Below are positions 6,635 to 62,225 of a stretch of DNA of 64,000 nt, in pieces. Below the pieces are notes generated by a model, which searched no databases, was not told the origin of the DNA, and worked only from the letters and a program-made list of their open reading frames with translations. Location of the stretch: positions 248,001-312,000 of IMG/VR virus record IMGVR_UViG_3300024999_000029; one strand, written 5' to 3'. The position numbers and the translations under genes were made by a program. Positions within the stretch are counted from its first letter, which is position 1; every line of letters starts with the position of its first letter.

Positions 6635-8218
6635 ATGGAAAACACAGTAAATTCAACAGTTACAATAGAAAAGCTACAAGAAGAAAATGAAATTCTTCAT
6701 CAGAAAAATTCACTTCTTCAACAAGAAAAAGCGGAACTAGCAGCCAAGCTAAATTGGTTTGAAGAACAGTTCCGTTTGAATCAACATTGGCGATTCGCAG
6801 CTTCTAGTGAAAAGACAGACCCTGAACAAATTTCACTTTTTAATGAGTCTGAGGTTGAAGCAAAGCCTGATGCGCCTGAACCTACTGTTGAAGAAATCAC
6901 ATATAAACGTCGTAAAAGCAAGGGCCACAGAGAAGAAATGCTTAAAGACCTTCCTATAGAGGTTATAGAGTACCGTCTTTTAGAAGATGAAAAAGTCTGC
7001 GATTGTTGCAGCGGCGAACTTCATGAAATGAGTATTGAGATAAGAAAAGAACTTAAAATTACGCCTGCACAAGTAAGCGTTGTAGAACATAGAAAATGTG
7101 TATATGCCTGCCGTAAATGTGAACAGAATGAAATAAAAACGCCTATCAAAACCGCATCAATGCCAAGGCCTGCAATACCAGGAAGTATAGCATCATCATC
7201 GGCAATAGCCCATATAATGACGGAAAAGTTTGTTAAAGGATTGCCACTTTACCGCCAAGAACAGGACTGGAAGCGTATGGGCGTGGAGATATCCCGCCAA
7301 ACAATGTCTAATTGGATGATCCAGAGTTCTGATAGGTGGCTACGACTAATTTATGAAAGAATGCATGAGCATCTTATGAAAAGGGACATCTTGCATGCCG
7401 ATGAAACCACATTGCAGGTACTGAATGAAGCTGGAAGGCCAGCTGATTCGACCTCATACATGTGGTTGTACCGAACTGGGCGAGAAGGATCTCCTATTGT
7501 ACTTTATGATTATCAAACAACTCGGGCAGGCAAGCATCCCAAAAAATTTCTCGAAGGTTTTAAAGGTTACTTGAATACAGATGGATATTCAGGCTATAAT
7601 GACATGTCTGGAATTATCAACGTTGGCTGTTGGGCTCATGCTCGACGCGGGTTTACTGATGCTTTAAAAGCAATGCCACCTAAAAAGGATGATAAACCCA
7701 CTGCCACCGAAGAAGGATTAGCATTTTGTAACAAGCTATTTGAAATAGAAAGAGGCTTGCATGATGTAACAGTAGAAGAAAGATATGAAGGCCGCCTAAA
7801 TAAAAGTCGTCCAATATTAGAAAAATTCAAGGAATGGCTTAAATATCAGCGCCCGAGAGTTACTCCGAAAAGTGCATTGGGTAAGGCAATTCAATACTGT
7901 CTAAACCAGTGGGATAAACTGGGGTCATTTATGTTGGATGGAAGGCTAGAAATTGATAACAATCGTAGTGAAAGGTCGATTAAACCTTTTGTAATCGGCA
8001 GAAAAAACTGGATATTCTCAAATAGTTCGAAAGGAGCTACTTCTAGTGCTACAATTTATAGCGTTGTTGAAACTGCTAAAGAAAACGGGTTGAATCCATT
8101 TATATACTTGATGTATCTTTTAGAAAGACTGCCCAATATGGACATCAAGGATAAAGATGCCTTGGATAAGCTTATGCCATGGTCGGATAGTTTACCTTCT
8201 GCTTGTAGAGTTAAATAA
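6635..8218 (+). CDS. tnpC: IS66 DDE transposase TnpC
   Basis: Leucine zipper, zinc finger, LHADETT, DGYSGY, CWAHARR and IDNNRSERSIKP motifs. Confidence 0.95.
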   Translation: MENTVNSTVTIEKLQEENEILHQKNSLLQQEKAELAAKLNWFEEQFRLNQHWRFAASSEKTDPEQISLFNESEVEAKPDAPEPTVEEITYKRRKSKGHREEMLKDLPIEVIEYRLLEDEKVCDCCSGELHEMSIEIRKELKITPAQVSVVEHRKCVYACRKCEQNEIKTPIKTASMPRPAIPGSIASSSAIAHIMTEKFVKGLPLYRQEQDWKRMGVEISRQTMSNWMIQSSDRWLRLIYERMHEHLMKRDILHADETTLQVLNEAGRPADSTSYMWLYRTGREGSPIVLYDYQTTRAGKHPKKFLEGFKGYLNTDGYSGYNDMSGIINVGCWAHARRGFTDALKAMPPKKDDKPTATEEGLAFCNKLFEIERGLHDVTVEERYEGRLNKSRPILEKFKEWLKYQRPRVTPKSALGKAIQYCLNQWDKLGSFMLDGRLEIDNNRSERSIKPFVIGRKNWIFSNSSKGATSSATIYSVVETAKENGLNPFIYLMYLLERLPNMDIKDKDALDKLMPWSDSLPSACRVK

Positions 8219-15195: not shown

Positions 15196-16431
15196 ATAGA
15201 TATAGATACTACTTATTTAAAAAATTATATTCGCTCTAATGTAAAATCTAGTGGTGATTTACAAAATTTATCAGATAGGTATAGTCAACAATATAATGAA
15301 GCTATCTCTAAGTTTGATGTGCTTATTAATTCAGACCGTGCCGACAAAATTTTTAAAGACGATATTTCTTATAAATGCATTGTTGATTATGGAATACAAA
15401 TAAAACAAAACAATTTAAAAAACCAATATACTAAAGAAATTTGGACTACACATAGTGATGGATTTAAAGTTGGAGATTTTGTAGAATTTGAAAATAAGGC
15501 TTCTAAAGAAAAAGTTCCTTATTTATTTATCAAAGGCGCTGAGAGTAAAGAGGGTTATGATGCTTTCTTTATGCAAAAGACTAATAATAATTTGAGTTTT
15601 GTTAAAAATCATATTTCATATACAGTGCCATGTGTAATTACAGCATCTGGTAATAGTATGGGTATGGATACAGATGAGATGAAGTATATATCTGAAATTG
15701 GTGACTTCATTATAGTTAGATGTGCGAACACTTCTGAATCGCAGAATATAGATGTAAATCAAATTTTTAAATTGGGAAAATGGAATTGGAGAGTAGAAAG
15801 TGTATCGGATATAATTGAGCCAAATTTATTGGTTATGAAAATGACTTGGGTTGCTGAGAGTGCTGATACGCACACGTATACGGTTGACATATTGAATGGA
15901 AGTGCAAGTATTCAAAATGGTAGTACTCTTCAGTTAAATGTAAATGTATTAGATAATGGAGAAATTATATCACCTACCCCAACAATTACTTACGTTTCAT
16001 CAGATATAACAAAAGCAAGTGTTTCTACTTCGGGTATTGTAACTGCTGTTAGTGAAGGTAGTTGTACTATTACAGCAACATCTAATGGAGTTAGTAATAG
16101 TGTTTCAATTACGGTAACTAATGTTGTTTCTGATAATATAACATACACATTAACTTCAGTAAGCCAACCAGATTATGAAATAAAAACAGGAGTAACAAAA
16201 ACTTACATTGCTAAGAAATTTAACAATGGAATAGAAGTTACTGGAATACAATTTAATTTTGAAGTTATTGCTACTAGTGTTCCAAGTTCAGCTTATACAT
16301 TAAACATTATTGATACAAAAAGTTGTTCAATCAAATGTAATCAATATGTTTATAATATTGTACTTCGTGCTACTGAAAATACAACGAGTAATTTTGTTGA
16401 CAAGACTATTAAACTTAGAAGTCCATTGTGA
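15196..16431 (+). CDS. Head-closure-like protein with Ig-like (Big_2) domain; probable non-canonical ATA start
   Basis: ITYVSSDITKASVSTSGIVTAVSEGSCTITAT is a Big_2 pattern. Frame is open upstream of the called GTG (15319) back to an AGGGGG SD at 15182-15187. Confidence 0.65.
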   Translation: MDIDTTYLKNYIRSNVKSSGDLQNLSDRYSQQYNEAISKFDVLINSDRADKIFKDDISYKCIVDYGIQIKQNNLKNQYTKEIWTTHSDGFKVGDFVEFENKASKEKVPYLFIKGAESKEGYDAFFMQKTNNNLSFVKNHISYTVPCVITASGNSMGMDTDEMKYISEIGDFIIVRCANTSESQNIDVNQIFKLGKWNWRVESVSDIIEPNLLVMKMTWVAESADTHTYTVDILNGSASIQNGSTLQLNVNVLDNGEIISPTPTITYVSSDITKASVSTSGIVTAVSEGSCTITATSNGVSNSVSITVTNVVSDNITYTLTSVSQPDYEIKTGVTKTYIAKKFNNGIEVTGIQFNFEVIATSVPSSAYTLNIIDTKSCSIKCNQYVYNIVLRATENTTSNFVDKTIKLRSPL

Positions 16432-18991: not shown

Positions 18992-19441
18992 ATGGCACAC
19001 TTAAACATTTATAAAGCTTCGGACGATTCAATCGTATCTAGTGCTGGAACACTAACAAACGCCGTAGAGTTTACCCTTAGGGCAGACCTCAGTGAGACTG
19101 GAGAAATTAGACTTTATGCAATGACAGATTTTGGATATGAGACAACGAGTACGGTGATATCATTTGTAGATAGTGAATTTAGAAAAGATCCAGGAGAAGC
19201 AATTAGGGCGAAAGACGGTGGAGATGGAGTTGCAACACTTACGAGTTGGGCGTTAGCAGCGGATAATGCAGGTTCGCCTGATACATATGGGGCTTATGGA
19301 GCGTCGCTTTCGCTAGGAACTGTAGGAAACGACACAGGTAAGATTTACTTTCATGCTAAGGCAAAAGCTGAAACTAGTGAAGAAGCAATTCAAGACTGTA
19401 GTGTCGCAATCAAAGCAGAGGGAATCGAAAGAGCAACCTAA
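18992..19441 (+). CDS. Accessory structural protein, stand-alone domain A
   Basis: Shares I.IYK, W.LA.D and FH..A motifs with four downstream paralogs. Confidence 0.55.
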   Translation: MAHLNIYKASDDSIVSSAGTLTNAVEFTLRADLSETGEIRLYAMTDFGYETTSTVISFVDSEFRKDPGEAIRAKDGGDGVATLTSWALAADNAGSPDTYGAYGASLSLGTVGNDTGKIYFHAKAKAETSEEAIQDCSVAIKAEGIERAT

Positions 19442-19469
19442 ACCTAGCTTAGAAAGGAAGGTGGCTTAA

Positions 19470-20903
19470 ATGGCAATAAATTACTATGTTAGTAACCAAC
19501 GTGGAAACGATTCTAATGACGGACTCACGCAAGAAACTCCATTCTACACTATATCTAAGGCAATCCCATTAGTAACAGCAGGGTCTATAGTTTATATAGG
19601 CTCTGGTTGCTACCGAGAAAAGCCTATACTACAGGTAGCAGGTACTGACGGAAATGTAATTAAATGGATACCTGACCCGAATTCAGAATACTTAACTTCA
19701 GACAATGTAGGAATAGTACGTGTAACGGGTTGTAACACAGATGAATATCCAACAACTGGTGGCTATGGTTGGTCTTTTAATGGTAAATATTATAATGAAA
19801 TTGGCGATCCTAATAAAGGATTTGGACAGATGTATATTGATGGTTGTCATTGGGGATACACAGTTAATATTGGATTTTCTACTTTGGGTGGAAAATGCTA
19901 TGGAATTACAGCTACTGGAAACGCAACAGTATTTTATTATGGAGAACAAAAAGACTGTATAGCAATAGCTGGTCAAACCGCATTTTCAGGTGGAATACAA
20001 ACAAATTGCATTGGAATTGCAGGGAGTTCGGCATATTATGCTGGTATTCATTACAATTGTATAGGAATTGCTGGGTATGCATGTTTTAATGCAACTACAA
20101 GAACAGATATAAACTGTTTGTCAATTGGTGGTCAATATGGATTTTACGCATATTCAGGTGCAGCAACTAGCACAAATTGTGTAGCAATAGGAAGTAGTAA
20201 TGGATTTTATGCAACAGGTTCAGCAACTGTAAATTATTGTCGTGCAATAAATTGTTCATATGGATTTTATGGTAGAGATAGTGCTAATTTATTAGACACA
20301 TCAACTTGTAGTTATGTTTATTGTAATAACAAACAGCATACTACAGGATTCCCTACTCCAGCTACTTATTATGAAACTGCTGAAGTTGCTCTTGCTAAAA
20401 GTTGTACATATTATCCGATAGCATTAATTGCTGCATTTATGCCAATGTTAGATTTTAATTATACAGGTGGAAGTAGTGATGTATTAACATATGTAGCTAA
20501 AGACATGATGGGATATGCAAGGGCATTGATTGATGGTACGCCTCATTATGGTGTTCACGAATATTCAAGAGTTGGAATAGATTTTACAAATTATCGTACT
20601 AATGCTCCAAGTATAAAAATAGAACAGGCAGGACAGCAGAAGTTTACATTTTTTGCTACTGGTGGAGAAGAATTTAGTAAATCTGTTTGGGTGAAGTGGG
20701 AAAATGTGACTGGAGATAAACCTCAACTGGCAGTTCGTGGAGATTATTTAACTGAAGTTGTATCTACGGCTACAGGTGACGGAACTAGTTGGGAACAATT
20801 AATTATAACTGCTACGCCAAGCAAGGATACTGAAATTGAGTTATATTTATATGCAAGAGATACTGGATCAACTGCTATTGTTTATTTCAGTGACCTTAGT
20901 TAA
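19470..20903 (+). CDS. Right-handed beta-helix (pectin lyase-like) protein, possible depolymerase/spike
   Basis: YYVS..GNDSNDG....PF.TI..A....GS.VYI..G.YRE entry motif, many short C.AIG coils, jelly-roll-like C-terminus. Confidence 0.7.
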   Translation: MAINYYVSNQRGNDSNDGLTQETPFYTISKAIPLVTAGSIVYIGSGCYREKPILQVAGTDGNVIKWIPDPNSEYLTSDNVGIVRVTGCNTDEYPTTGGYGWSFNGKYYNEIGDPNKGFGQMYIDGCHWGYTVNIGFSTLGGKCYGITATGNATVFYYGEQKDCIAIAGQTAFSGGIQTNCIGIAGSSAYYAGIHYNCIGIAGYACFNATTRTDINCLSIGGQYGFYAYSGAATSTNCVAIGSSNGFYATGSATVNYCRAINCSYGFYGRDSANLLDTSTCSYVYCNNKQHTTGFPTPATYYETAEVALAKSCTYYPIALIAAFMPMLDFNYTGGSSDVLTYVAKDMMGYARALIDGTPHYGVHEYSRVGIDFTNYRTNAPSIKIEQAGQQKFTFFATGGEEFSKSVWVKWENVTGDKPQLAVRGDYLTEVVSTATGDGTSWEQLIITATPSKDTEIELYLYARDTGSTAIVYFSDLS

Positions 20904-20908
20904 AGGAT

Positions 20909-23884
20909 GTGATGGTAGACATGAAAATAATTAATGGTAGATTGTATTCACGTCTACCTAATAATACAAACAAATCATTAATAAACAATGGTTTATTATA
21001 TACATATATTTGGAACACAATTAAAATAGTATCTATTTTTATACAAACAAATAGAAATGTCACAGAATCAACATCGTTTTTAAAACAAACATTTAGATGG
21101 ATGGCTGATAGCTTTAAAGGTAAAACTATCAGAAAACTTATTCAGTCTATATCAAATACAAATCAAACTAACAGAGTTGTTAATACAACATCAGACACTT
21201 CGAGACAAACACGTAGGAATAATGTGAGTTTAATCACACTTTTTGGTAGTACTTTTAGGAAAATAACACAGTTAATTTCAAGTGGATATCAAACTATAAA
21301 AAACAACAATAAATTAATTAGTAGTTTATATCAAACATATCGTAAAATTCCATATATATTCAAAGGAAAAACAATAAGGAAACTAGAACAATCTATATTA
21401 ATATTAACTCAGACATACCGTAAAATTCCCGATATTTTTTTGGGTGATACAATAAGAAAACTAACACAATTGAATTCATCTTTATTTCAAACTAATAAAA
21501 ATATAAATAAAACGTCTATAAATTTATCTCAATCTGAACGCAATATTATAGGATTGATTAGTAATAAAATACAAAATAATAGAGTTATTATTAAATTGAA
21601 TTATGTTAGTAGTCAAATAAAAAGAAACATTATAGAATTAAGTGCATCAATAAAGCAGACATATAGAAAGATTAATAATATGTTTGTGCTTAATACGCAA
21701 ACAAGTAGAAAAATTAATAGTATATCTATTTTTTATGTTCAAACAAATAAAAAAATATATAAATTAATTAGTGCGCTTCATCAATCCGTAAGACATAATA
21801 TGATTATAGTTTATTGTATTAATCAAATTAAAAGGGATGTAAATAAATTATATTTTATTAATAAGCAGATAAAAAGAAATATCATCCAACAAATTGATGC
21901 TATTATTCAATCTAAGAGAAATATTAATAAAATTATCATTATTATGAATCAATTAAATAGAAATGTTGAATTATTTAAAGTATTATTAAAACAAACTTAT
22001 AGAAAAATAACATTATTAGTTTTACATAAATATCAAACTATAAAAACTAATAACAAGTTAATCAGTATATTAAAACAAACCTATAGAAAAATACCAGATG
22101 TATTTTTAGGTGATACAATCAGAAAGTTAACAAAATCAAGCTTAGTTTTATTTCAAACAAGCAAAGATATTAAAAAGACTTTTATAATTTCTAATCAAAC
22201 CAAGCAAAACATTATAGAATTAATTAGAAATAATATACAAAATGGTAGATTTATTATTGATAAAGTAAGCATTAGCAAACAAACTAAGCGTAATATTACT
22301 AAGTTAATAAGTACAAGTACAGTTAGTGTATATGGACAACTAATTCGTAAGATTAATGGATTGGTTAATTATTTTGGTCAGAGTAAACGTAATATTTTGA
22401 GCGTTGTATATTCTTATTGGCAGACTAAAAGAAATAATGGTTTATTTAGTTATTATGCTGCTCAAAGTAAGAGAAATGTTATTAAAATAGTAGATTATAT
22501 TAATCAAACAAATAGAATATTAAATAAGATTACTATTATTAATAAACAATTATTTAGAAATATTTATAATTTAACATTAATTATTAAACAAAGTAATAGA
22601 AAAACTATTTTGACTACTTATTTTAATAAACAAATTAATAGGATAATTAATCAATTAATAAGTTGTAATAGTCAAACTAAACGAAATATAAACAAAAGTG
22701 TCGATTATATTATTCAAACAAATAGAAGTATTATAAAGTTTTTATTAGAAATTTCTATTCAAACTAAGAAATTAGTTGTAGTTAAAGTTGAATCCTTAAA
22801 ACAAACTAAACGAAGTATTACTAGACTAATAAGTAATTATGAAACTACAAAGGTATCTATTCAGATTGCTAGAAAAATGGAACTATTAGTTTCACATATT
22901 GGACAGAACAAGCGAAATATTGTTAAATTGTTTAGTCGTATAAAACAGAGTGCCAGAGATATTATAAAAATATCTTATATTAATGTGCAGTCAAGAAGAA
23001 ATATAATTAGATTTGATGAATATTTAAAACAGATCGGAAGGAATGTTATAAAATTAACTGTTTTTATAAAACAGAATTATCGTAAAATATTCAAATTAGA
23101 ATCTATTATAAGCGGAAGCAAACGAGACATAATTAAGTTAGTTAAATATGATGCTCAATCAAATAAAGATATCAGAAAAATAGTATCAGATTATTATACT
23201 CAAATTAAGCGTAATACTATTGAATTGATAAGTTTTAAAAATCAGACTAATATAAAAATTAATAAGATTTCGAGTTACATTACACAAACCAAGAGAAATG
23301 TAAACGAATTTATTATTTCTACCATTCAAACAAATAGAGATATTATAAAAATTTTATTAATTTCTGTTCATTTAAAAAGGAATATTTTAAAAATTATTTA
23401 TATTAGTAAGCAAATAAAGAGAAATATTATTGTATTAATTAGTACTGATGCGGTTGTTGAGGCATTTATTCAATTGATTAGGAAAATTAATAAGATAGGA
23501 TTTAATGTAGTACAAAGTAAACGAAATATTATTAAATTATATGATATTAATAAACAAGTAAAAACTAATATAAATAAATTACAAAGTTTTATTCGACAAC
23601 AAAGAAGAGATATTGTTTTATTAGTGATGACTAAATATCAAAACAAAAGAAATGTTTTATTATTAGTTAAAATTTTAAAACAAAGTAAGAGTAATATACT
23701 AAAACTAATATCCCCTATTCGTCAATTAATCAGAAAGCTTATAACTATATGGGATGTATTTGATTTTGATTTGTTTGATGCAGTAGAGTTGGAGTTAGAT
23801 TTTTATATTGAAGAATTGAAGTTGGATTTATATGTGGCTGAAATGCCTCTCGATTTTGAGATTGAGGAGGTTAAGAAATTATGA
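20909..23884 (+). CDS. 991-aa basic protein of about 65 tandem 14-aa repeats (Q-T/S-x-R-x-I)
   Basis: Clear 14-residue periodicity from about aa 45 to 945; abruptly acidic C-terminal tail. Confidence 0.7.
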   Translation: MMVDMKIINGRLYSRLPNNTNKSLINNGLLYTYIWNTIKIVSIFIQTNRNVTESTSFLKQTFRWMADSFKGKTIRKLIQSISNTNQTNRVVNTTSDTSRQTRRNNVSLITLFGSTFRKITQLISSGYQTIKNNNKLISSLYQTYRKIPYIFKGKTIRKLEQSILILTQTYRKIPDIFLGDTIRKLTQLNSSLFQTNKNINKTSINLSQSERNIIGLISNKIQNNRVIIKLNYVSSQIKRNIIELSASIKQTYRKINNMFVLNTQTSRKINSISIFYVQTNKKIYKLISALHQSVRHNMIIVYCINQIKRDVNKLYFINKQIKRNIIQQIDAIIQSKRNINKIIIIMNQLNRNVELFKVLLKQTYRKITLLVLHKYQTIKTNNKLISILKQTYRKIPDVFLGDTIRKLTKSSLVLFQTSKDIKKTFIISNQTKQNIIELIRNNIQNGRFIIDKVSISKQTKRNITKLISTSTVSVYGQLIRKINGLVNYFGQSKRNILSVVYSYWQTKRNNGLFSYYAAQSKRNVIKIVDYINQTNRILNKITIINKQLFRNIYNLTLIIKQSNRKTILTTYFNKQINRIINQLISCNSQTKRNINKSVDYIIQTNRSIIKFLLEISIQTKKLVVVKVESLKQTKRSITRLISNYETTKVSIQIARKMELLVSHIGQNKRNIVKLFSRIKQSARDIIKISYINVQSRRNIIRFDEYLKQIGRNVIKLTVFIKQNYRKIFKLESIISGSKRDIIKLVKYDAQSNKDIRKIVSDYYTQIKRNTIELISFKNQTNIKINKISSYITQTKRNVNEFIISTIQTNRDIIKILLISVHLKRNILKIIYISKQIKRNIIVLISTDAVVEAFIQLIRKINKIGFNVVQSKRNIIKLYDINKQVKTNINKLQSFIRQQRRDIVLLVMTKYQNKRNVLLLVKILKQSKSNILKLISPIRQLIRKLITIWDVFDFDLFDAVELELDFYIEELKLDLYVAEMPLDFEIEEVKKL

Positions 23885-24171
23885 TAGAACTTTATAAAGG
23901 TGAAAAGCGTTTATGTGGTATGAAAATTTCTTCTAGAAGTGGTAAAATCTTTACGATAGAGAGTGTTTCATGTAAAGTGGTTGACAATGCAGGGATTACT
24001 ATTCAAGAAGAGGAAGAAGGAATAGTTGAAGAACATTCGGTTTTTTGTTTGGTCGATACTACATTGGATGGATATGTTTACAGCAAAGGATATATATTGC
24101 AATTTAGTATTGTTTTAAAGGATGTGCCTAAAATAATCATGGGGAAGTTAAGTATTAAAATAAAGAAATAA
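23881..24171 (+). CDS. Small beta-sandwich (BppU-N-like) structural protein
   Basis: Translationally coupled (ATGA overlap); alternating beta-strand pattern. Confidence 0.4.
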   Translation: MIELYKGEKRLCGMKISSRSGKIFTIESVSCKVVDNAGITIQEEEEGIVEEHSVFCLVDTTLDGYVYSKGYILQFSIVLKDVPKIIMGKLSIKIKK

Positions 24172-24269
24172 TAATCAATATATTTTGAAAGGAATGAAAT
24201 AAATAGTTTTTAGTGGAGAGATTTTTTATTCTCTCCTTTTAATTTAATAGTAAAGGAAGTGAAATAAAT

Positions 24270-25382
24270 TTGGCTTCGATTAAAATATATAAAGATAATC
24301 CTACTGTAGGGCTTCAAGATGGAAGCACAGTTTCAGAAAATGACTTCACTAATCCAGTAGACAGTGGCTTCCTAATTATTCCAGAAACTGGAACAGAAAT
24401 TGGAGAATGGAAAAAATGTGCCTTAAGGTGTAACGAAGGTCTCCAGACGATAAATGACCTGAACAGGAATTGTAGGCTGGCATTAGAAGGATCAAAATCT
24501 AACTGCTGGCAATTAGCTCCTGATAATTTGGGAGTAGTTGGTACTCCATCAGATTGGGGGCAACCACTCGATATAGCTTCAGATAAAATTTATGATAAAA
24601 ATTATATTTTTCATATCAGAGCTTGTACTGATGTTGGTGATGTTGTAGAGAATGACAAAACTACAAAACTGACAGCACAAGCACTAGTAGGCTTACCTTG
24701 GATTTTAGACATTAATGATATGCTTGCTGCCGAGAATGTAGGAGAGGTGTTTTCAAGTATATTCACAATACCAGAAGATTGTATTATATATGCGTCAAAT
24801 GTAGATGCTGCCAATCCAGAGTATGTTCTTAATTACATTATAAATGGCGTTGAGTTAACAATAGGACATATGGGAGGCACTACTTTTGAATGGATTCATC
24901 AAGCATTAAGTGTTTCTAAAAATTCAACCTTCCAGATACGTATACATGGAATTTTTGCGAATGAAGCTGAAGGTAATTTAAAGCTATTTTTAAATAATGA
25001 AAATGGAAAAGAATTGGCTTTTTTTTATTGGCATATTAATCAAGCTTGTTACCTTACTACTGCGTGTGTTCAGTATAAAGGATTGGAAGATAATTGCTCT
25101 GAGTTAACTGCGATGAGATTATTAAGAGAACATTATATTGATGATTTAGGCTATAGGGATTTGATTAGTGAATATTATCAATTAGCTTCGCAAATTATAG
25201 AAGCAATAAATGCGGAAGATGATCCTAGCTTGGTTTACGAGCAAATTTATCAGAGTGTTAAGATATGTGAAAGTGCAGTTAATAATGAAGAATGGCAAGT
25301 TGCTAGAGATGAATATTTGAGTATGTATTATGAGTTGGCAGAGACTTATATTGATGGTTATGTTAGGTTGATGCCTTTGTAA
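24270..25382 (+). CDS. Modular protein: domain A + domain B + CFI-box-CTERM-like domain
   Basis: C-terminal CYLTTACV...C.EL..MRLLREHY motif; A and B shared with neighbours. Confidence 0.7.
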   Translation: MASIKIYKDNPTVGLQDGSTVSENDFTNPVDSGFLIIPETGTEIGEWKKCALRCNEGLQTINDLNRNCRLALEGSKSNCWQLAPDNLGVVGTPSDWGQPLDIASDKIYDKNYIFHIRACTDVGDVVENDKTTKLTAQALVGLPWILDINDMLAAENVGEVFSSIFTIPEDCIIYASNVDAANPEYVLNYIINGVELTIGHMGGTTFEWIHQALSVSKNSTFQIRIHGIFANEAEGNLKLFLNNENGKELAFFYWHINQACYLTTACVQYKGLEDNCSELTAMRLLREHYIDDLGYRDLISEYYQLASQIIEAINAEDDPSLVYEQIYQSVKICESAVNNEEWQVARDEYLSMYYELAETYIDGYVRLMPL

Positions 25383-25401
25383 TGAAAGGAATGAGATAAA
25401 T

Positions 25402-26166
25402 TTGGCTTTTAAAATTTCTATATATAAAGGAGCCGTTGTAGCAGGGGATCAATCTGGGACTGTAATTTCGGAATTAGATTGGACAAATGCTTTAGATTCT
25501 GGTTACTTGCTAATTCCTGAGACTAATCCAAGCTATACAGAAGGAGATTGGATTCGTTTAGGAATTCGTTGTGAATCAGGACACCAGACGGTAGAAGATT
25601 TGTCTAGACATGTTAGAATTTCGCTTGACGGGTCTAATTCTTCTTATTGGCAATTAGCAGCGGACAATGGCTCTGGCTCACCTAGCACACCCGTTGAATG
25701 GAATCAACCTCTTGATATAACAACTGTAGTTACAGATGTAAATACTTTATTCCATGTTAGAGCTAGATGTGCGGATACTGAAATTGTACAGAATGATAAA
25801 ACTTGTGAAATTATGGCACAGGCTTTGGTAGGAGAAGTTCCGGGATGGACTATGCAGTTTGATGATGTGACTTTCGCTGCTGCTACATCTAATTATTGTG
25901 GTCAAGATACAGTACTAGAGGATTGTATGATATATATTTATTTTACTGGAACTATTGTTCCAAGTTATATACAAGTTATGAAGAATGGTTCGCCATGGGG
26001 TGGATATAGTGCTGGTAGTTGGATAAATAGACCTTTTAGTTTTGTGTCAGGGGATGTATTATTGTTTTCGGCAGGAGCAAATACTCCGGGTTATTTTGAT
26101 ATTATAATGCGTTTAGACGATGAAAATGGAAGAATAATTTCTAGTTTTAGATATACAGCTACGTAA
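25402..26166 (+). CDS. Modular protein: domain A + domain B
   Basis: Internal paralogy with 24270 and 26201 (EDC.IY..FTG, RLDDENGR). Confidence 0.65.
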   Translation: MAFKISIYKGAVVAGDQSGTVISELDWTNALDSGYLLIPETNPSYTEGDWIRLGIRCESGHQTVEDLSRHVRISLDGSNSSYWQLAADNGSGSPSTPVEWNQPLDITTVVTDVNTLFHVRARCADTEIVQNDKTCEIMAQALVGEVPGWTMQFDDVTFAAATSNYCGQDTVLEDCMIYIYFTGTIVPSYIQVMKNGSPWGGYSAGSWINRPFSFVSGDVLLFSAGANTPGYFDIIMRLDDENGRIISSFRYTAT

Positions 26167-26200
26167 TTAGTTATAAAATATTGAAAGGGGTGAAATAAAT

Positions 26201-27277
26201 TTGGCTTATCATATAGCGATATATAAAGACAATCCAGTTACAGGAAATCAATCAGGAACAATAGTTTCAGAGAATGACTGGACTAATGCCGTTAATTCAA
26301 ATTATATATCCATTCCCGAATCTTCGTTTACTTCTGGCGAATGGATAAAACTTGCCGTTAGGATACCAGAATCTGGAGCACAAACCATATTTGATTCAGG
26401 AAGACATTGTAGGATAAGTTTAGAAGGTGTAGGAAATACAAATTGGCAATTAGCAGATGATGACGGTAGTGGAAATCCAAGTGGTACACCAATGGATTGG
26501 GGATTACCTTTAGACATAATCGAAATGATAACTGATAGTAATAAATTGTTTCATATTCGTGCTAAAGCAAATTCTGGTGAAAATGTAATGAACGAAACAA
26601 CTATGGAGATAATCGCAGAAGCTTTAGTTGGCACTGCTCCACCTTGGACATTAGATTTCAATGATATGACTTACAATTCTGAAACAGGTCATTTTACTAA
26701 CATCGTAACTGTACCAGAAGATTGTGTGATATATATTGATTTTACTGGAACTACAACTCCTGATTATTTAACTGTATATATAAATGATTTCGACACAGGT
26801 GGATATTCTAGTAGTGCGTGGACTCCGAGACTTTTCAATTTAACACAGAATGATACATTAAAATTTGAAATTAAATTGTTGGATACTGGATATTCAGATA
26901 TTACAATACGTTTAGATGATGAAAATGGAAGATTAGTTTCTGATTTTAAATACACAGATACAGGATGGGTTTTAAATTTTGGTAGTAATCTTACATTTGC
27001 CGATCAATATACAGACCATGTTACTATACCAGAAGCATGTCGTTTACATTTTTCGTTTACGGGAACATCAACAAATCAAATAAGTGGATTTGTAAATGAA
27101 CAAGAATATTATATATGGAATTCAAATAGTTGGTGGTGGTATTATTTAGATTTTAATGCAGGTGATGATTTCTACATGTGGATTAATCCGAATACTGGTT
27201 CATCAGGAACTTTGTATGTAAGGGAAACGGATGTTAATGGAAGAATTATAGGAACGGTTGATTATTCTTATAATTAA
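26201..27277 (+). CDS. Modular protein: domain A + two domain B copies
   Basis: Two PE.C...FTG...GR.I units after the shared N-terminal domain. Confidence 0.65.
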   Translation: MAYHIAIYKDNPVTGNQSGTIVSENDWTNAVNSNYISIPESSFTSGEWIKLAVRIPESGAQTIFDSGRHCRISLEGVGNTNWQLADDDGSGNPSGTPMDWGLPLDIIEMITDSNKLFHIRAKANSGENVMNETTMEIIAEALVGTAPPWTLDFNDMTYNSETGHFTNIVTVPEDCVIYIDFTGTTTPDYLTVYINDFDTGGYSSSAWTPRLFNLTQNDTLKFEIKLLDTGYSDITIRLDDENGRLVSDFKYTDTGWVLNFGSNLTFADQYTDHVTIPEACRLHFSFTGTSTNQISGFVNEQEYYIWNSNSWWWYYLDFNAGDDFYMWINPNTGSSGTLYVRETDVNGRIIGTVDYSYN

Positions 27278-27304
27278 AATAAAATAATGAAAGGAATGAT
27301 ATAA

Positions 27305-27715
27305 ATGGCTTTAATTAATCTTTATGGAAATAATCCGGTGGCAGGAGATACATCGGGTACTTTAATTTCAAGTGGAACAGGAGTTACGCCAATAGATACT
27401 GGGTTTATTAAGATATTATCAACTGGGGAGCAGGTGGATGACTGGATTTCAATTTGCATCAGGACAGACTCAGGTTATAAGACTATTGAAGAAAATAGTA
27501 GACATTGTAGAGTAAGTATTATCGGTTCTTTGAACTGGCAGTTGGCTTTAGATACTGGTTCGCCTCTATCATGGGGCGATCCTTTGGATATTTTAACAGA
27601 AATAGGTTCGGTAAACACTTTGTTCTATATCCGTGCAAAATCTTTGAGCACAGAAACGCCGATCAACGATGACACAGTGGACATACAGTTATCTGCGACC
27701 ATAGGTGCTGTTTAA
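27305..27715 (+). CDS. Stand-alone domain A protein
   Basis: NP.AGD.SGT.IS, RHCR.S and WG.PLDI shared with paralogs. Confidence 0.65.
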   Translation: MALINLYGNNPVAGDTSGTLISSGTGVTPIDTGFIKILSTGEQVDDWISICIRTDSGYKTIEENSRHCRVSIIGSLNWQLALDTGSPLSWGDPLDILTEIGSVNTLFYIRAKSLSTETPINDDTVDIQLSATIGAV

Positions 27716-27733
27716 AAAAGGAGTTGATATAAT

Positions 27734-28513
27734 ATGTCAGTCATCACGACCTCAATTCCAACAAACATAGCAAAAACATCTATAAGTTTTCATGGCAATG
27801 CAGTAATTTGGACATTGCCATTTGATGGTGTTAATCAGCCTGGTGTAGAAATTGATGATTTAATTACTAATACATTAACAATTCCTGGTAATTGCGTATT
27901 GTACATGGAACTTACAGGCAATTCTGGTTTTGTTACTTGGTTTAAAAATAATGAAGATACTTGGGCTTATGGCCCATATCAAGAAGATCCAGAAGATCCA
28001 GAATCTCCTGTCATATGGATATGGTACAACCAAACATTTTCATTAAATGAAAATGATACATTAGCTATAAAAGTAGCTAACTTTCTTGGTGGGCCGATGG
28101 ATGGTGATATTACTATTAAATTAAATACTGTGTCTGGTCGTACATTATCTCAATTCCATTTTGCTGCAGAAGGATCTTGCTATCTTACTACTGCATGTGT
28201 TGAATACAAAGGATTAGAGGATGATTGTTCTGAATTAACATCAATGCGTTTATTGAGAGAACATTATATTGATGAACCAGAATATATCGCATTAATTTCA
28301 GAGTATAACCAATTATCAAGACAGATTATCAACATGGTAAATCAAGAAATAAATCCAGATATAATTTATGAGCAGATATATCAGAGTGTAAAAATATGTG
28401 AAACTGCAATAAATAATGAAGATTGGCAGACTGCTAGGGATGAGTATTTAGGTATGTATTATCAATTAGCAGAAACTTATATACCTAATTATGTTAGATT
28501 AATGCCTTTATGA
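27734..28513 (+). CDS. Modular protein: domain B + CFI-box-CTERM-like domain
   Basis: C-terminal 111 aa nearly identical to those of 24270-25382, both ending YVRLMPL. Confidence 0.7.
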   Translation: MSVITTSIPTNIAKTSISFHGNAVIWTLPFDGVNQPGVEIDDLITNTLTIPGNCVLYMELTGNSGFVTWFKNNEDTWAYGPYQEDPEDPESPVIWIWYNQTFSLNENDTLAIKVANFLGGPMDGDITIKLNTVSGRTLSQFHFAAEGSCYLTTACVEYKGLEDDCSELTSMRLLREHYIDEPEYIALISEYNQLSRQIINMVNQEINPDIIYEQIYQSVKICETAINNEDWQTARDEYLGMYYQLAETYIPNYVRLMPL

Positions 28514-28528
28514 AAGGCGGTGAAATAA

Positions 28529-29512
28529 TTGGCAACAGAAGTATATTTTGAGTATAAAAAATCTACAGATTCAACATGGACAGAAACTACTAAACAAACA
28601 ATAACTACAACTCAAGATTATGATTTAGATGTATCAACTTTAGATATGGGAACTATATATGAATGTCGTGCAGTTGTAAACGATGATGGTTGTGTTAATA
28701 GTGGTGCAACAATGACCTTTTTTACATGGTCGGAAGAGGTTAATAATTTTGATTCATTGAGAAAGTTATTATTAGATGATATTTTTAATGGCGACACATT
28801 AAGACAACTTTTACTAGATGATATTACAAACTTTGATACTCTTAGAAAAATTGCTTATGGTGGTTATTTTAGTGGGAAAACGTATCGTAGTATTGTCAAA
28901 TATTATGAAGAATTATTTGATTCGTTGAGAGAGTTGGTAATAGATGATAATATTAATTTTGATTTATTAAGAGTATTGATTTTATCTGAAACCGTTGATT
29001 TTGATAGTTTGAGACAATTGATCGTGGAAGATAGTAGTGATTTTGATACGTTAAGACAATTAGTAGTAGAAGATTCTCAATTGTTTGATACATTACGCAA
29101 ATTAATTGATGATAGTGGATTTTCTACTGGTTTACTTAGAATTCTTAGGTCTGCAACTGTCGAAGAAGATGAAGATGAAGGAATGGAGAATTGCTATGTA
29201 TTTTTCAAAGATGCAGAATTAGCTATTTTAGGTAATTCGCTTGATGTGTCTGGTTTTAGCGATTTCAATCTTGAATTATCATCCAAGTTTGGTTCAAGTT
29301 TTGAATCTATTATTGAAGGGAAAATCGATCAAAATTGGTATGAAATACAAAGTATAAAAAAGGACGATTTGTCTCTTATTGGCAAACCTAGTATTGTTGG
29401 GTTTTATTTAATTGATTTAACAGGTTTAAAGTTTATAAGATGTTCGTTAAATTCCGCATTATTTGATGAAATAACGGCAAGAGGTCATTTGTCTAAAGAA
29501 AGAGATTTTTAA
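28529..29512 (+). CDS. FN3-like domain + ten acidic 14-aa repeats (F-D-T/S-L-R-x-L) + jelly-roll-like C-terminus
   Basis: VYFEYKK...TIYECRAVV FN3 pattern; 14-aa periodic FDSLR/FDTLR; C-terminus resembles the next ORF. Confidence 0.65.
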   Translation: MATEVYFEYKKSTDSTWTETTKQTITTTQDYDLDVSTLDMGTIYECRAVVNDDGCVNSGATMTFFTWSEEVNNFDSLRKLLLDDIFNGDTLRQLLLDDITNFDTLRKIAYGGYFSGKTYRSIVKYYEELFDSLRELVIDDNINFDLLRVLILSETVDFDSLRQLIVEDSSDFDTLRQLVVEDSQLFDTLRKLIDDSGFSTGLLRILRSATVEEDEDEGMENCYVFFKDAELAILGNSLDVSGFSDFNLELSSKFGSSFESIIEGKIDQNWYEIQSIKKDDLSLIGKPSIVGFYLIDLTGLKFIRCSLNSALFDEITARGHLSKERDF

Positions 29513-29529: not shown

Positions 29530-29859
29530 TTGAGTAATTTTCCAATTAAAATGCATACGTTTTATGACAATGTAAGTGTTAGTGGTAATGGAAACGAGTT
29601 AATAGTAGAGAGCGGAATTCAGGTTATAAATGTGGAATTCTCTGGAAACGCTGTATTTTCATCGTTGCTAGAAGGTTCGTTAGATGGGGATGAATGGCAT
29701 AGTATAATGGGGATTAATCTTACTTCTCTAGCAACATCTATAAATGTAATATCTAATGGATTATATCAAATTGATCTTACTGGCTTCCATCGTTTTAGAA
29801 TATCTGTAAATAGTTTAACATCTGGAAATTTAACAGTTATAGGATTAGCAGTTAACTAA
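29530..29859 (+). CDS. Small beta-rich structural protein
   Basis: EGSLDG..W..I...G.Y.IDLTG...R pattern shared with the C-terminus of 28529-29512. Confidence 0.55.
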   Translation: MSNFPIKMHTFYDNVSVSGNGNELIVESGIQVINVEFSGNAVFSSLLEGSLDGDEWHSIMGINLTSLATSINVISNGLYQIDLTGFHRFRISVNSLTSGNLTVIGLAVN

Positions 29860-32986: not shown

Positions 32987-33853
32987 ATGCAGAAAATTTT
33001 AATCCGCAAAGGCTCGGATGCAGAAAGACTTACAATAACACCCGATAATGGTGAGCCAATTTTCACGACAGATACTAAGAAACTATATGTCGGCGATAAT
33101 AGTACGGTTGGAGGTATAGAAATTTCTGGAGGTGTTTCATCTAGTTCATTATCAACTGTGCATCTAAATGGAGCAGGTGCAGTTTTAGTTAAAGAAGAGC
33201 ATTTTGGAAATATGATTCATATAGAGTCGGGTACTTCTATTGCTCTTGCAAAAGCAGATTTTACCAAAGACGGAAGTTTATATATACAAAATCATTCCGG
33301 TACTCAATTACCTGTCAACTTTACAGGTGTATTTGAAGGGGTGTATGACGCAGGAAAACAAAGTGATTTAATAGCTACTCAAACTACAACTCTTGAATAT
33401 TTAGAAATTATGCTAGTTGTAGTTACTGAGAATAGTGGTAGTAAATTTATTAATTTTACAAAACTTAGTGGTAAAATAGAAACAGGTTCTTGGGTTCCTA
33501 CAATTACATTCACAGCCGTAGACCCCGATGTATCAGGTGCAACAGTTTCTCTTTATAAAGCAATTTATACTAGAATTGATGATAAAGTTAATTTTAATTT
33601 ATCTTTTGGAATTAATAGTTTTACGGCAGGTAGATATTTGATAGGTTCTTATACATTGCCAAAAACTAGAATTGGAACGGAGAGTATTATTTCAGTAGTA
33701 AATAGTTCATTTACATCACAATATGTACCAACATATGCATTATTATTTTTTAGTATTCCTACTATCTTTATTGGAACTCCAGATATTCGATTACCTGCAT
33801 CATCGTTAGTTACTATTAATGTAATTGGTTCATATGTAACCAACGAAGCGTAG
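32987..33853 (+). CDS. Fibre/appendage protein with Mtd_N/hyaluronidase-N-like anchor
   Basis: ILIRKG....R....P..GEP..TTDTKKLYVGD N-terminus. Confidence 0.6.
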   Translation: MQKILIRKGSDAERLTITPDNGEPIFTTDTKKLYVGDNSTVGGIEISGGVSSSSLSTVHLNGAGAVLVKEEHFGNMIHIESGTSIALAKADFTKDGSLYIQNHSGTQLPVNFTGVFEGVYDAGKQSDLIATQTTTLEYLEIMLVVVTENSGSKFINFTKLSGKIETGSWVPTITFTAVDPDVSGATVSLYKAIYTRIDDKVNFNLSFGINSFTAGRYLIGSYTLPKTRIGTESIISVVNSSFTSQYVPTYALLFFSIPTIFIGTPDIRLPASSLVTINVIGSYVTNEA

Positions 33854-33864
33854 GAGGTATAAAC

Positions 33865-35958
33865 ATGAGTGATATTCTCATAAAAAGAGGCAAAGAATCG
33901 AATAGAACTTCATTTATGCCATTAAGAGGAGAGCCAATTGTAAGTTTTGATGACACAACTGGTAAACCCCGATTGTTTTTGGGTACAGGAACTGATATTG
34001 GTGGCATTGAAATAGGCACAAGTGCCGCTCACACTCATGAAGAATCTGATATTACTAATCTGGTATCGGATCTTAGTGCTAAAGAGGTATCAGCCAATAA
34101 AAGGGATTTAATTGAAGGATATACAACATCTTCCGCTTATCCATCGACAAAAGGGTTGGCTGCATATCTACATTCTACTCTATATAAAAGACAAGGCACT
34201 CTAGCCGACGTTATTGGTGGGACAGTAACATCATATACTGAAGGTGTATATCATTATACAAAAATAAGTTTTAGTGATTATGTGCGCTTCGACTATTTAA
34301 GTATAACTCCCAATCCTCCTAATTCTTATAAAATTAAGATTGATGTTTCTCTTGACGGCACAACATGGATGTTTATAACAAGCACCTTTGATAGTGTTGG
34401 AATAATGGCTTCTAATGGTACTCTTGTGGCAACAGCAAAACACGTCAGATTCGGAGCTAGCACAGTAGATAATATACCATCAGATGATTATACTTATAAG
34501 ATTCAAGAATATAATATATCTGCGAATTCTGAAAAAATAGCTAATAAAGTAACTGCATTTCAAACAACACCAGATAATACACATTATCCTAGTGAAAAAT
34601 TACTAAAAGATCAATTAGATTATAAGTCTTCTTTTGAGTCACCTTTATGTTTATATCCAACAGAAGGGCAAGTTGTAGCTTCAAGAATTCCATATGTAAT
34701 AACTGAAGCTGGAAGTGCTATTAGATATTGTAATTTATCTGCAAATAATCAAATATTAGCTGTTTTACAAGATGTTGCATGGAGTACAGCAACTGCTGAT
34801 TATGATGCATATAATGGAATTATTAAAATAGTTTCAGGTACAACTATAGAGTTTACAGATGATGTATTCGTTTCATTAGAAGCAACTTTAAGAGCAGATA
34901 GTTTTACTGGTTCTAGTGATAAATTTTTAAGATTTGCGTGGGTATGGGCTGATAATGATGATGTTATATCTGGAACAAATACATCATATATTTTCCCGCC
35001 AACTGAAAGTTATGGTTATAATTCATTGCCAATAGTAAAAGTATCAAGGAAATTTCATAAAGGAAATAAGATTAAGCTTAGAGTTACAGGTGCAGGTTCA
35101 ACTGGCACATCAACTGCTAGTATTCAAAAAGAAAGTACAAAATGTTACATTTATGAAATTAATAATACTTCAGGATATGAAAGAGATAAAGTACGTACCA
35201 TTATTCGTAAAAAATCTGATAGTAGTATTGTTTGGGATAGTGGAGAGATAGGTAAAACTACTAATCTTATTAAACGTTCTATGAATATGGCATATTCAAT
35301 ATGGGATAAAAACCTATGTAGTGCCACAGGCAATGCAAATTCACTTGGCATGTCAAAGATTACTCTTACGAGTAATTGGGATGTGTCAGTTAATCAACGC
35401 TTATATGGATATAGAAGTGGCGATGAGTATACCTTGCAAATTATAGTAATGAATCCAACAATAAATAAAATAAAAGTATCATTAGAAGATTATATTGGAC
35501 ATCAGGGAATTTATGCGGAATTTGGCTTAACTGACAGTGGTTCTATTATATCTAGTGGTACACACGGAGTTGATTCAGGGACATTAATACAAGCACAAAT
35601 TACTTATCCGCAGACAGGAATGTATGTATTGAATATTAGGGGAACTCCTGTGGTGGACACTAGTAGTTTTAAAGACCTAGATTCACAATTGGATTTAGAA
35701 TTTGAAGATGATATTAGCGGTGAAATTTATATTGGATTTGCTAGTGTGAAAAAGGGATTATATGATATTGCTAATAATTATCATTTATTAACTGATGATG
35801 CTAATATTCCTGAGCCGACCTATGCTAAATATTTGGTGGGATTAGATACTATGTTGGATGCTTCAGAAAATTATGAAGTAATAGTTGAAGATGTGACTAC
35901 AAAGGGGTTAAAAACATCTCAAAGTGATATTGTGAGTTTTTCAACTGGTTCATCGTAA
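33865..35958 (+). CDS. Large fibre/appendage protein with the same N-terminal anchor
   Basis: ILIKRGKES.R....PLRGEP...FDD....P.L..G.G...GG N-terminus; beta-rich body. Confidence 0.6.
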   Translation: MSDILIKRGKESNRTSFMPLRGEPIVSFDDTTGKPRLFLGTGTDIGGIEIGTSAAHTHEESDITNLVSDLSAKEVSANKRDLIEGYTTSSAYPSTKGLAAYLHSTLYKRQGTLADVIGGTVTSYTEGVYHYTKISFSDYVRFDYLSITPNPPNSYKIKIDVSLDGTTWMFITSTFDSVGIMASNGTLVATAKHVRFGASTVDNIPSDDYTYKIQEYNISANSEKIANKVTAFQTTPDNTHYPSEKLLKDQLDYKSSFESPLCLYPTEGQVVASRIPYVITEAGSAIRYCNLSANNQILAVLQDVAWSTATADYDAYNGIIKIVSGTTIEFTDDVFVSLEATLRADSFTGSSDKFLRFAWVWADNDDVISGTNTSYIFPPTESYGYNSLPIVKVSRKFHKGNKIKLRVTGAGSTGTSTASIQKESTKCYIYEINNTSGYERDKVRTIIRKKSDSSIVWDSGEIGKTTNLIKRSMNMAYSIWDKNLCSATGNANSLGMSKITLTSNWDVSVNQRLYGYRSGDEYTLQIIVMNPTINKIKVSLEDYIGHQGIYAEFGLTDSGSIISSGTHGVDSGTLIQAQITYPQTGMYVLNIRGTPVVDTSSFKDLDSQLDLEFEDDISGEIYIGFASVKKGLYDIANNYHLLTDDANIPEPTYAKYLVGLDTMLDASENYEVIVEDVTTKGLKTSQSDIVSFSTGSS

Positions 35959-35983
35959 TGGATTGGTGGTGAATAATTAATAT

Positions 35984-36445
35984 ATGAATATTTTATTAAG
36001 GAGAGGAAAGGAATCTAAAAGAAATACTATAACTCCATTAAGAGGCGAATTATTGATTGGTTTTGATGATGTGACTGATAAACCTAAATTGTATATGGGC
36101 AATGGCGTTAATGTTGGTGGATTACCATTATCAGATAATATTGGTTCAACATGGACTCCAATTATTACAGGAGATGGAACTGTAGAAAATGCTATGTATA
36201 CAAGAATTGACAATATAGTAACTTTTAGTTTAAGATTAAGTTGGACTAGTAGTACAGCAACATTTACACTTCCGATTGCAAGTGATTTTACAGATATATC
36301 AGATTTAATTGGAACTGTGATTTGTTTTCCAGATGTAGGGACTGAAATGAGGGTTGAGGCTGACGTTTCGTTAAATCAAGGTAGTGTGCGTACTGTATCA
36401 AGTGCTACTAATGCGTTGATTACTGGACAGTATATTATTAGGTAA
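35984..36445 (+). CDS. Short fibre protein: same anchor plus a C-terminal domain shared with 32987
   Basis: ILLRRGKES anchor; W.P.I...A.YTRID..V.F.L shared with the C-terminal domain of 32987-33853. Confidence 0.6.
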   Translation: MNILLRRGKESKRNTITPLRGELLIGFDDVTDKPKLYMGNGVNVGGLPLSDNIGSTWTPIITGDGTVENAMYTRIDNIVTFSLRLSWTSSTATFTLPIASDFTDISDLIGTVICFPDVGTEMRVEADVSLNQGSVRTVSSATNALITGQYIIR

Positions 36446-50800: not shown

Positions 50801-51294
50801 TAAATGAGAGCGATATTATTGCTCAAATGCAAGCAAATTCTAAGTCTTGGTCTAATGCTAGTCCTGAATATAAAAAAGAGCTTGCGGCAGAGAATCTTAG
50901 ACTTGGAACAAGTATAGGATTAACCAGAGATGATAAGACTGGCATTTGGTATGATAAAAGTGGAGTTAGAGCTTATGCTGGTGGTGGCACAAGTACTGAA
51001 ACTCAACTTGCATTATTACATGGCACAAAAGCTAATCCAGAATGGATTCTTAATTCAGGTCAAATGAAAAGTTTGATTACTAATTTGACTTTACCTCAAT
51101 TCAAGATGCCTGAAGTTAAGGGATTATCTAATGGCAGTGGGGTTCAAATTGGTAGTTTGATTACAGTAAATGGAAATGTAGATAAAGCAGCTATGCCAAA
51201 ACTTGAAACTGTTGTAAATCAAGCAGTTGATAAGTTGGTTAATACGATGGGACTTAGGGGCAATACTAGGTCGACAAAATCATATAGCATTTAG
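47853..51294 (+). CDS. Tape measure protein, exon 2
   Basis: In frame after splicing; hydrophobic segment, long coiled coils, typical TMP C-terminus. Confidence 0.9.
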
Positions 51295-62104: not shown

Positions 62105-62225
62105 ACAAACACGCTTCACAATGTGCGGCAAAGAAACATTGTTAATACAAAAGTGCTTCACAATGTGCATTAAATTACATTGTTGATACAAACACGCTTC
62201 ACAATGTGCGGCAAAGAAACATTGT
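62105..62225 (+). ncRNA. cptI: Type III antitoxin RNA (CptI-like), about 2.9 repeats of 41-42 nt
   Basis: Units at 62105, 62147 and 62188; loop ACAATGT pairs perfectly with downstream ACATTGT in all three; stem CGC/GCG becomes TGC/GCA in unit 2. Confidence 0.85.

Follow-up and report, generated by a model that had tools for sequence, protein, structure and literature searches.

Six genes built from three shuffled protein modules, designated A, B and C, occupy positions 18992-28513 of a 64,000-nucleotide stretch of phage DNA. This stretch, referred to below as the window, corresponds to bases 248001-312000 of the 349,050-bp IMG/VR virus record IMGVR_UViG_3300024999_000029, which is rated 99% complete. 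The source genome is that of a huge uncultured phage with about 30% G+C and nearly all genes on the + strand. Mosaicism of these genes at the level of single domains is real, as the comparison of five related lineages indicates. We tentatively favour the reading that the array encodes modular tail-surface adhesins or decorations, with A as a conserved scaffold or anchor and B as an exchangeable module, and hold the chance of this to be somewhat below even. The close relatives retrieved for comparison come from environmental metagenomes; wherever their record names state a habitat, it is groundwater, and several contigs carry the ANAN16 label. The six genes, with domain boundaries from hidden Markov models (HMMs), are the following:

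18992-19441, + strand: A' gene, a divergent stand-alone A, 149 amino acids (aa); found with the window-only A HMM; phrog_23562 E 0.006
24270-25382, + strand: A-B-C gene, 370 aa; A 24270-24698, B 24699-25043, C 25044-25379
25402-26166, + strand: A-B gene, 254 aa; A 25402-25839, B 25840-26163
26201-27277, + strand: A-B-B gene, 358 aa; A 26201-26638, B1 26639-26956, B2 26957-27274
27305-27715, + strand: A-only gene (protein P0004), 136 aa; phrog_23562 E 2e-11
27734-28513, + strand: B-C gene (protein P0005), 259 aa; N-terminal peptide 27734-27802, B 27803-28174, C 28175-28510

The open reading frames (ORFs) and domain boundaries agree with the six architectures proposed in an earlier sequence-only reading of this DNA, and the motifs quoted there are visible in the alignments. 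The four A copies of the array proper are 36-56% identical to each other and the B copies 20-46% (25% between B1 and B2 of the A-B-B gene), while the two C copies share 74% identity (E 4e-63). The BLASTP E-values for B-domain pairs of the array and its relatives, where listed, range from 1e-8 to 1e-72. The similarity between the copies is far beyond chance. The entire 349-kb genome contains exactly five copies of A, all in this region. The fifth, A' at 18992, has an insertion of about 15 aa, and the window-only HMM caught just its C-terminal half (E 7e-8). Judged from its sequence, A' is a true member of the A family despite this divergence: its alignment with a stand-alone A from the unrelated phage L018 covers 148 aa at 31% identity (E 1e-9). 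The A' orthologue in L001 is 91% identical, with a ratio of nonsynonymous to synonymous substitutions (dN/dS) of 0.09.

Three array genes have a TTG start codon, and a conserved GAAAGGAATGAnATAAAT ribosome-binding region is located upstream of every A-first gene, the TTG-starting ones included. The B-C gene has its own AAGGAG ribosome-binding site and ATG, downstream of the TAA stop of the A-only gene. These genes can be read without recourse to an alternative genetic code. A fusion of A with B-C by frameshifting or read-through was considered and is ruled out by this clean TAA followed by AAGGAG and ATG; the joining of the two is also ruled out by the insertion element that separates both genes in L001/L002. 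Between the 96-aa gene preceding the array and the A-B-C gene (24168-24236, + strand), an orphan copy of the ribosome-binding motif without a start codon can be noted, followed by a terminator-like hairpin at 24215-24236. In relatives, the corresponding gap is occupied by a GIY-YIG homing endonuclease gene or by an additional A-B gene, so this stretch may be a deletion scar.

Array composition, which the sequence-only reading expected to vary among relatives, is indeed not invariant: five lineages have five different arrays (HE, GIY-YIG homing endonuclease gene; IS, insertion element).

Window: ABC, AB, ABB, A, BC
L001/L002: HE, ABC, AB, A, IS, BC
L005-L011: HE, ABC, ABB, A, BC
L024/L025/L028: ABC, HE, AB, HE, A, BC
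L026/L027: AB, ABC, AB, A, BC

The A-B-C gene and the terminal pair, A followed by B-C, are constant in all five lineages, and the A-B-C orthologues are 77-85% identical across them. The middle genes (A-B or A-B-B) differ in number, order and content; the window's A-B gene has no counterpart in three of the four related lineages. The trees of the A and B domains are incongruent. The window's A-B gene and the third gene of the L026 array share an A that is 79% identical and a B that is only 27% identical; the A-B gene of L024 joins an A of the A-B-B type to an unrelated B; and the A-B gene of L001/L002 corresponds to the A-B-B gene minus B2, with B1 being 91% identical. The idea that A carries interchangeable modules is supported by unrelated B domains on the same A orthologue and, elsewhere, by F5/8 type C, NHL-type propeller and Laminin_G_3 domains.

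Silent sites point in the same direction. When the A-B-C genes of the window and L005 are compared, a silent change is present in 37 of 116 conserved codons of A, 8 of 94 of B and 20 of 93 of C (p = 2e-4). For the A-B-B genes of the same pair, the counts are 37 of 102 in A, 20 of 95 in B1 and 11 of 90 in B2 (p = 4e-4). Since the level of silent change differs among the domains of one gene, recombination with breakpoints near the domain borders is the simplest explanation. The dN/dS values of orthologues are 0.11-0.33 for A, 0.09-0.25 for C and 0.09-0.96 for B; taken together with the conservation of the C paralogues, they indicate that A and C are constrained and B is freer. GIY-YIG homing endonuclease genes are located in the gaps between array genes of relatives (L005-L011, L024, L025, L028), and a serine recombinase (Resolvase) gene with an OrfB_IS605/TnpB-type gene lies between A and B-C in L001/L002 (10488-12235). 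The borders of genes are exactly where these mobile elements are found, which makes them possible drivers of the mosaicism.

The adjacent A-only and B-C genes had been read as a split version of the A-B-C gene. As a description of architecture, this is correct; as history it is probably wrong, the pair being present in all five lineages. More likely, the separate pair is the ancestral unfused state and A-B-C, A-B and A-B-B are derived, given that A and B-C are commonly found apart whereas their fusion is specific to this clade; this polarity is drawn from the distribution of the architectures and not from a rooted tree.

All three modules are separable, each of them occurring alone or in other combinations in public data. 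The idea that A and B are one diverged domain was rejected at the sequence level, as the profile-profile comparison (hhalign) gives a probability of 1.9%; the broad fold class is common to both. Module A corresponds to phrog_23562 (PHROGs v4, function unknown), which is matched by P0004 with E 2.2e-11 over profile positions 4-131 of 137, by the A parts of the other array genes with E 1.5e-8 to 2.3e-4 (0.006 for A'), and by 103 of 107 members of the wider A family (best E 3e-64). No consistent Pfam match was found among these 107 members, classical Ig-like families (Big_2, I-set, fn3) included, and a sequence search found no solved structure. An AlphaFold2 model based on the 107-sequence alignment is an all-beta sandwich with a predicted local distance difference test score (pLDDT) of 95.6, and the fold may be of the Ig-like type. 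Its best neighbours in BFVD, a set of predicted viral protein structures, reach template modelling (TM) scores of about 0.6; they are domains within large multidomain proteins, encoded by Bacillus phages G and SP-15 and by Brevibacillus phage SecTim467. The sequence-only reading could assign the array to no described family; this is outdated as far as A and the remote likeness of C to CFI-box-CTERM (described below) are concerned, and it holds in the sense that neither family has a characterised member.

A search of an A+B profile against 1.84 billion representative proteins returned 367 clusters at E <= 1e-3, and 145 listed matches were scanned. A is the sole array domain in 116 of the 145, and most of these 116 are stand-alone proteins 120-165 aa in length. 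A is an autonomous, widespread phage module, typically a stand-alone protein of about 140 aa. Among the matches listed, A-B fusions are confined to this clade of groundwater huge phages. Proteins from outside the clade join A to an F5/8 type C domain (P0083), an NHL/SGL-type propeller (P0139) or a Laminin_G_3 domain (P0145), and A is also found at the C-terminus of larger proteins. By eye, an Arg/Leu-containing VGRSLxxPY repeat can be seen after A in P0083 and P0139, possibly related to the FDxLRxL repeats of a neighbouring gene product in the window.

The genomic places of A genes differ. The A-NHL protein of L020 is encoded after an HK97-type capsid gene, and the L023 protein with A near its C-terminus is encoded after the tape measure. 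The proposal that A is a virion-docking module is not supported. A may be a general Ig-like scaffold instead of a specific docking module, since its proteins sit at such different places. Between the capsid and A-NHL genes of L020, a 174-aa gene (7452-7976) encodes a protein whose C-terminal half resembles the end of A by eye; it lies below detection with the A profile and is possibly a very distant relative of A.

Module B is modelled by AlphaFold2, within the B-C protein, as a second beta-sandwich having no sequence kinship to A. No consistent Pfam match was found among 27 members of B. The B-C protein opens with a 23-aa N-terminal peptide, which is predicted with low confidence (pLDDT below 50). 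Elsewhere, B is found alone with an N-terminal extension of 20-30 aa, as B-C, and once before a Pretoxin-HINT domain. A locus search with the C alignment revealed 12 unrelated IMG/VR contigs carrying C, with B detected in 10 of them, and no A gene was found within 5 kb in any of the 12. No A was found near free B in its contigs either, one of which (L030) is only about 1 kb long. The suggestion that A stands beside B or B-C as a general rule is rejected by these contigs.

The surroundings of B bear on a different explanation, according to which the products, above all B-C, are assembly factors or adaptors that fold or mount neighbouring fibrous proteins and are not displayed payloads. The clients would be the beta-helix, 14-aa-repeat and Mtd_N-type proteins encoded nearby, and the array would vary by co-variation with fibre tips. 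In four unrelated viral contigs (L039, L042-L044), the B-C gene abuts or overlaps the end of a gene encoding 710-1163 aa; in L043, the large product has a collagen-like stretch and is similar to the Bdellovibrio bd2133/cell-wall surface anchor family protein (PDB 8ojn, 8ond). Free B in L030 and L031 lies downstream of a gene judged by eye to end like a tail fibre, and in two phages unrelated to each other the gene for a stand-alone A lies immediately before one for a beta-helix protein. These positions agree with the assembly-factor explanation, the place right after a fibre gene being the usual one for tail-fibre assembly genes. We consider it unlikely, given that Pfam, PHROG and NCBIfam scans of the array proteins revealed no known chaperone family, that the fusions of A to lectin-like domains resemble structural adhesins, and that four to five sister genes in a row would be unusual for chaperones.

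The single protein in which B precedes Pretoxin-HINT (P0136, metagenomic and outside the window) consists of a distant B, this self-cleaving domain and an unassigned C-terminal region. The Pretoxin-HINT domain starts with a Cys directly after B, and the layout is that of polymorphic toxin-like proteins. Module C has its opening Cys in the corresponding place, and this hint makes it conceivable that a covalent or self-processing linkage exists at the B/C border. Such a linkage may form part of a self-assembling kit of A, B and C modules, in which free A, peptide-B, peptide-B-C and stand-alone C-like proteins may bind one another or the fused proteins. A few genes would then give many different heteromeric tail decorations in one phage. 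We regard this kit, with its Cys link, as very improbable. A complex prediction for A (P0004) with the N-terminal peptide and B of P0005 gave 0.13 against a mark of 0.32, which counts neither way.

Module C is predicted to be a five-helix domain of 112 aa. No convincing fold match was found in the PDB with the two-domain model, and no solved structure was found by sequence. Fourteen of the 15 C members match NCBIfam NF041770 (CFI-box-CTERM) over positions 1-64 of 69 with a best E of 1.2e-6, and the scores do not reach the curated cutoff of 40 bits: the A-B-C gene obtains 16.7 bits, the C domain of the B-C protein by itself 13.9 and that protein in full 11.0. Because all of them are far below this cutoff, C is considered only remotely similar to CFI-box-CTERM and is not filed as a member. 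C opens with a Cys that is invariant in the alignment (CYLTTA), followed by helices, and this matches the Cys-aromatic-aliphatic motif opening CFI-box-CTERM. The Cys in question is residue 259 of the A-B-C protein and residue 148 of the B-C protein. The literature searched contains no mention of the CFI-box-CTERM family and hence supplies no function for C; searches of the protein atlas returned only unnamed viral or bacterial clusters. C is at the C-terminus of every protein observed, including those of all 12 unrelated viral contigs. The silent sites of the two C paralogues are saturated (proportion of silent differences, pS, 0.70), so that recent gene conversion is rejected as the source of their 74% identity; with silent sites saturated and the protein so similar, the copies appear old and strongly constrained.

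This conservation would also suit an arrangement like that of the T4 decoration protein Hoc, where C would bind the virion and A and B would be displayed as variable Ig-like domains. Genes without C would in that case attach via other contacts or stay unattached. C is the most constrained module, both between paralogues and by the dN/dS of its orthologues, its placement in the unrelated contigs is always C-terminal, and A and B are both predicted sandwiches of putatively Ig-like type. We nevertheless hold this arrangement to be quite unlikely, less so than the kit. Three of the five array proteins (A-B, A-B-B and A) and A' have no C, and no other form of the A family is nearly as common as A alone, so A must work without C. 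Besides, the array is in the tail region, not in the head region.

The latter follows from the order of genes in the window, whose landmarks are:

2098, + strand: large terminase
6635, + strand: IS-type transposase
8338, 31350 and 46802: HNH homing endonuclease genes
15319-16431: gene with a Pfam match to Big_2
17732, + strand: YomU-type tail tube
18992-28513, + strand: six-gene A/B/C region
29530, + strand: XepA/YomS-like gene
32987-36445, + strand: three genes with an Mtd_N-type N-terminus
43947: integrase-like gene
45057-46661 and 47836-51294, + strand: tape measure, in two pieces
57553, + strand: minor tail protein

The array is located between the tail-tube and tape-measure genes, and the series from terminase to minor tail protein is all on one strand; this order assigns the array to the tail module. 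No matches inside the array were found in the Rfam and tRNA scans. The alternative that the proteins are not virion components at all, and are intracellular or host-directed accessory proteins (e.g., with a role in takeover or in superinfection exclusion) that just happen to be encoded within the late region, was also weighed. Huge phages are rich in accessory genes, the array proteins have no characterised homologue, and mobile elements are present in the region (HNH in the window, GIY-YIG genes and the insertion element in relatives), all of which is compatible with it. We give this alternative a slim chance: the genes are on the same strand and tightly spaced within a run of tail and fibre genes, beta-sandwich domains are fused to lectin-like domains in relatives, and the partnership with a beta-helix lyase-like protein is conserved.

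The genes adjoining the six are as follows:

19470-20903, + strand: 477-aa beta-helix, polysaccharide-lyase-like protein; PF07602 DUF1565 in the N-terminal part, 21.9 bits (cutoff 20.3)
20909-23884, + strand: 991-aa protein of 14-aa (42-nt) repeats with a K/QTxRNI core
23881-24171, + strand: 96-aa gene, directly upstream of the array in all relatives
28529-29512, + strand: 327-aa protein with FDxLRxL repeats of 14 aa (42 nt)
29530-29859, + strand: 109-aa protein like the XepA/YomS C-terminal domain; NF047953 E 7e-5; phrog_16458

The 477-aa product can be placed by sequence among DUF1565/Pel9A-type beta-helix proteins, and it also gives a weak match to rhamnogalacturonan lyase. Its counterpart in L018, which matches PF22842 (Pel9A-like_beta_helix), is 37-41% identical. 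The repeats of the 991-aa protein are similar to those of a 403-aa protein at the equivalent position in L018, and no Pfam or PHROG family was found for it. Tandem Repeats Finder detected no repeats at the DNA level, despite their 42-nt spacing. A cassette of stand-alone A, beta-helix lyase-like protein, 14-aa-repeat protein and small protein is thus represented in the window by A' and products of 477, 991 and 96 aa, and the same order is found in the unrelated 38-kb phage L017/L018 with products of 138, 470, 403 and 87 aa. The repeat period of 14 aa is common to the 327-aa, 991-aa and L018 403-aa proteins. Residues 222-319 of the 327-aa protein are 32% identical (E 2e-8) to the 109-aa product of the next gene, whose orthologues match PF27453 (XepA).

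Further downstream, genes 32987-33853, 33865-35958 and 35984-36445 (+ strand; 288, 697 and 153 aa) have a common N-terminal module of about 50 aa, which is 39-45% identical among them; the copy in the first gene gives a match to Pfam Mtd_N, the N-terminus of the major tropism determinant, with E 5e-7. Their C-terminal parts differ, and the three genes are probably the tail fibres of this phage. The two tape-measure ORFs match consecutive positions of phrog_4211 (375-775 and 787-1084), and an HNH homing endonuclease gene (46802-47701, + strand) lies between them; no Rfam intron family was found there at threshold. The transposase gene 6635-8218 (+ strand; phrog_688, E 5e-127) is in a 2-kb stretch with 38% G+C, compared with about 28% around it, and looks like an insertion element within the head/packaging region. 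A full-length Rfam Fusobacteriales-1 RNA motif (RF02920) was found at 62107-62225 (+ strand), scoring 93 bits against a gathering score of 52.

That A, B and B-C genes keep company with beta-helix, repeat and fibre-like genes suggests a surface, fibre-associated role; the same company gives no indication of a single fixed place where A would dock. Under the tail-surface reading, we infer the following working model. The sister proteins would sit on the outside of the phage tail and act as accessory adhesins or decorations. The N-terminal, putatively Ig-like beta-sandwich A would serve as conserved scaffold or attachment module. The one or two B beta-sandwiches would be distal and exchangeable, with host-surface or environmental glycans as their probable ligands. 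The conserved CFI-box-type helical domain C probably contacts a conserved partner or drives oligomerisation. Diversity would arise by gain and loss of whole genes, by gain and loss of single B domains, and by recombination near domain borders between co-circulating phages; the homing endonuclease genes and the insertion element in the intergenic gaps of relatives may promote such exchanges.

Several points weigh against this model. The phage is uncultured and the presence of the proteins in its virion is itself deduced; no homologue was detected in the cultured-phage collection by megablast of the region or by tblastn with A, as found in the window and in L018, and with a distant B-C. To our knowledge, the groundwater huge phages have no cultured members. 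A is less conserved than C, as would be expected equally well if the anchor were C-terminal, and the position of B-C directly after fibre genes is also the classic one of a fibre-assembly chaperone. A is not tied to a single docking site, as the positions of its genes in L020 and L023 vary, and there is no carbohydrate-binding family among the Pfam matches of B.

Together with the beta-helix, 14-aa-repeat and XepA-like genes and the three Mtd_N-type fibre genes, the array forms an island of about 18 kb, bounded by the tube and tape-measure genes, in which putative host-interaction proteins reshuffle. Three uncharacterised modules are given a predicted fold, A and B a family size, and all three natural chimeras; the A family comprises over a hundred clusters of stand-alone proteins among the matches listed. 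The natural swaps reveal where the modules can be cut and rejoined, which is useful for structural work and for understanding the evolution of phage surface proteins. A conserved scaffold with exchangeable binding domains is in itself a principle that is already well known.

Compared with phrog_23562, where the protein is stand-alone and the profile has 137 positions, the array differs in the fusion of A to B and C, seen only in this clade among the matches listed. The flanking YomU-type tube and XepA/YomS-like genes resemble the region of SPbeta/PBSX-type phages that extends from tail tube to tape measure, and we know of no A, B or C genes on the SPbeta gene map. The array and the beta-helix and repeat genes seem to have been added between the tube and XepA-like genes. 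C resembles CFI-box-CTERM in its C-terminal placement, opening Cys and subsequent helices, and differs from it in its larger size (112 aa), two additional helices and sub-cutoff scores.

The Ig-like decoration proteins Hoc of T4 (PMC10385173) and pb10 of T5 (PMC5292684; reviewed in PMC7602432) are non-essential surface accessories with a presumed role in weak adhesion. They are variable strings of Ig-like domains joined to one conserved binding domain, and by analogy the array proteins may be built in a like manner. The array differs in its location in the tail module and in having several sister genes with differing domain counts; neither Hoc nor pb10 has an equivalent of the helical C domain, and no sequence relation to them was found in Pfam or PHROGs. 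In the receptor-binding proteins of Klebsiella phages, an anchor, a branching domain and a docking peptide are recognised, modules are swapped horizontally, and a second protein is mounted on the first via a short conserved N-terminal peptide (PMC6872550, PMC8262889, PMC13352976). The array resembles them in combining a conserved N-terminal structural module with an exchangeable C-terminal, putative specificity module and in the beta-helix depolymerase-like gene that adjoins an A gene, and the 23-aa peptide of B-C and the 20-30-aa peptides of stand-alone B may be parallels of the docking peptide. It differs from them in that no sequence or family relation was found, the payloads are small, putatively Ig-like sandwiches and not depolymerases, and up to five sister genes are present in a row. 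By sequence, the array belongs to neither group; in working mode, the Klebsiella receptor-binding proteins and the Hoc/pb10 decorations are the systems closest to it.

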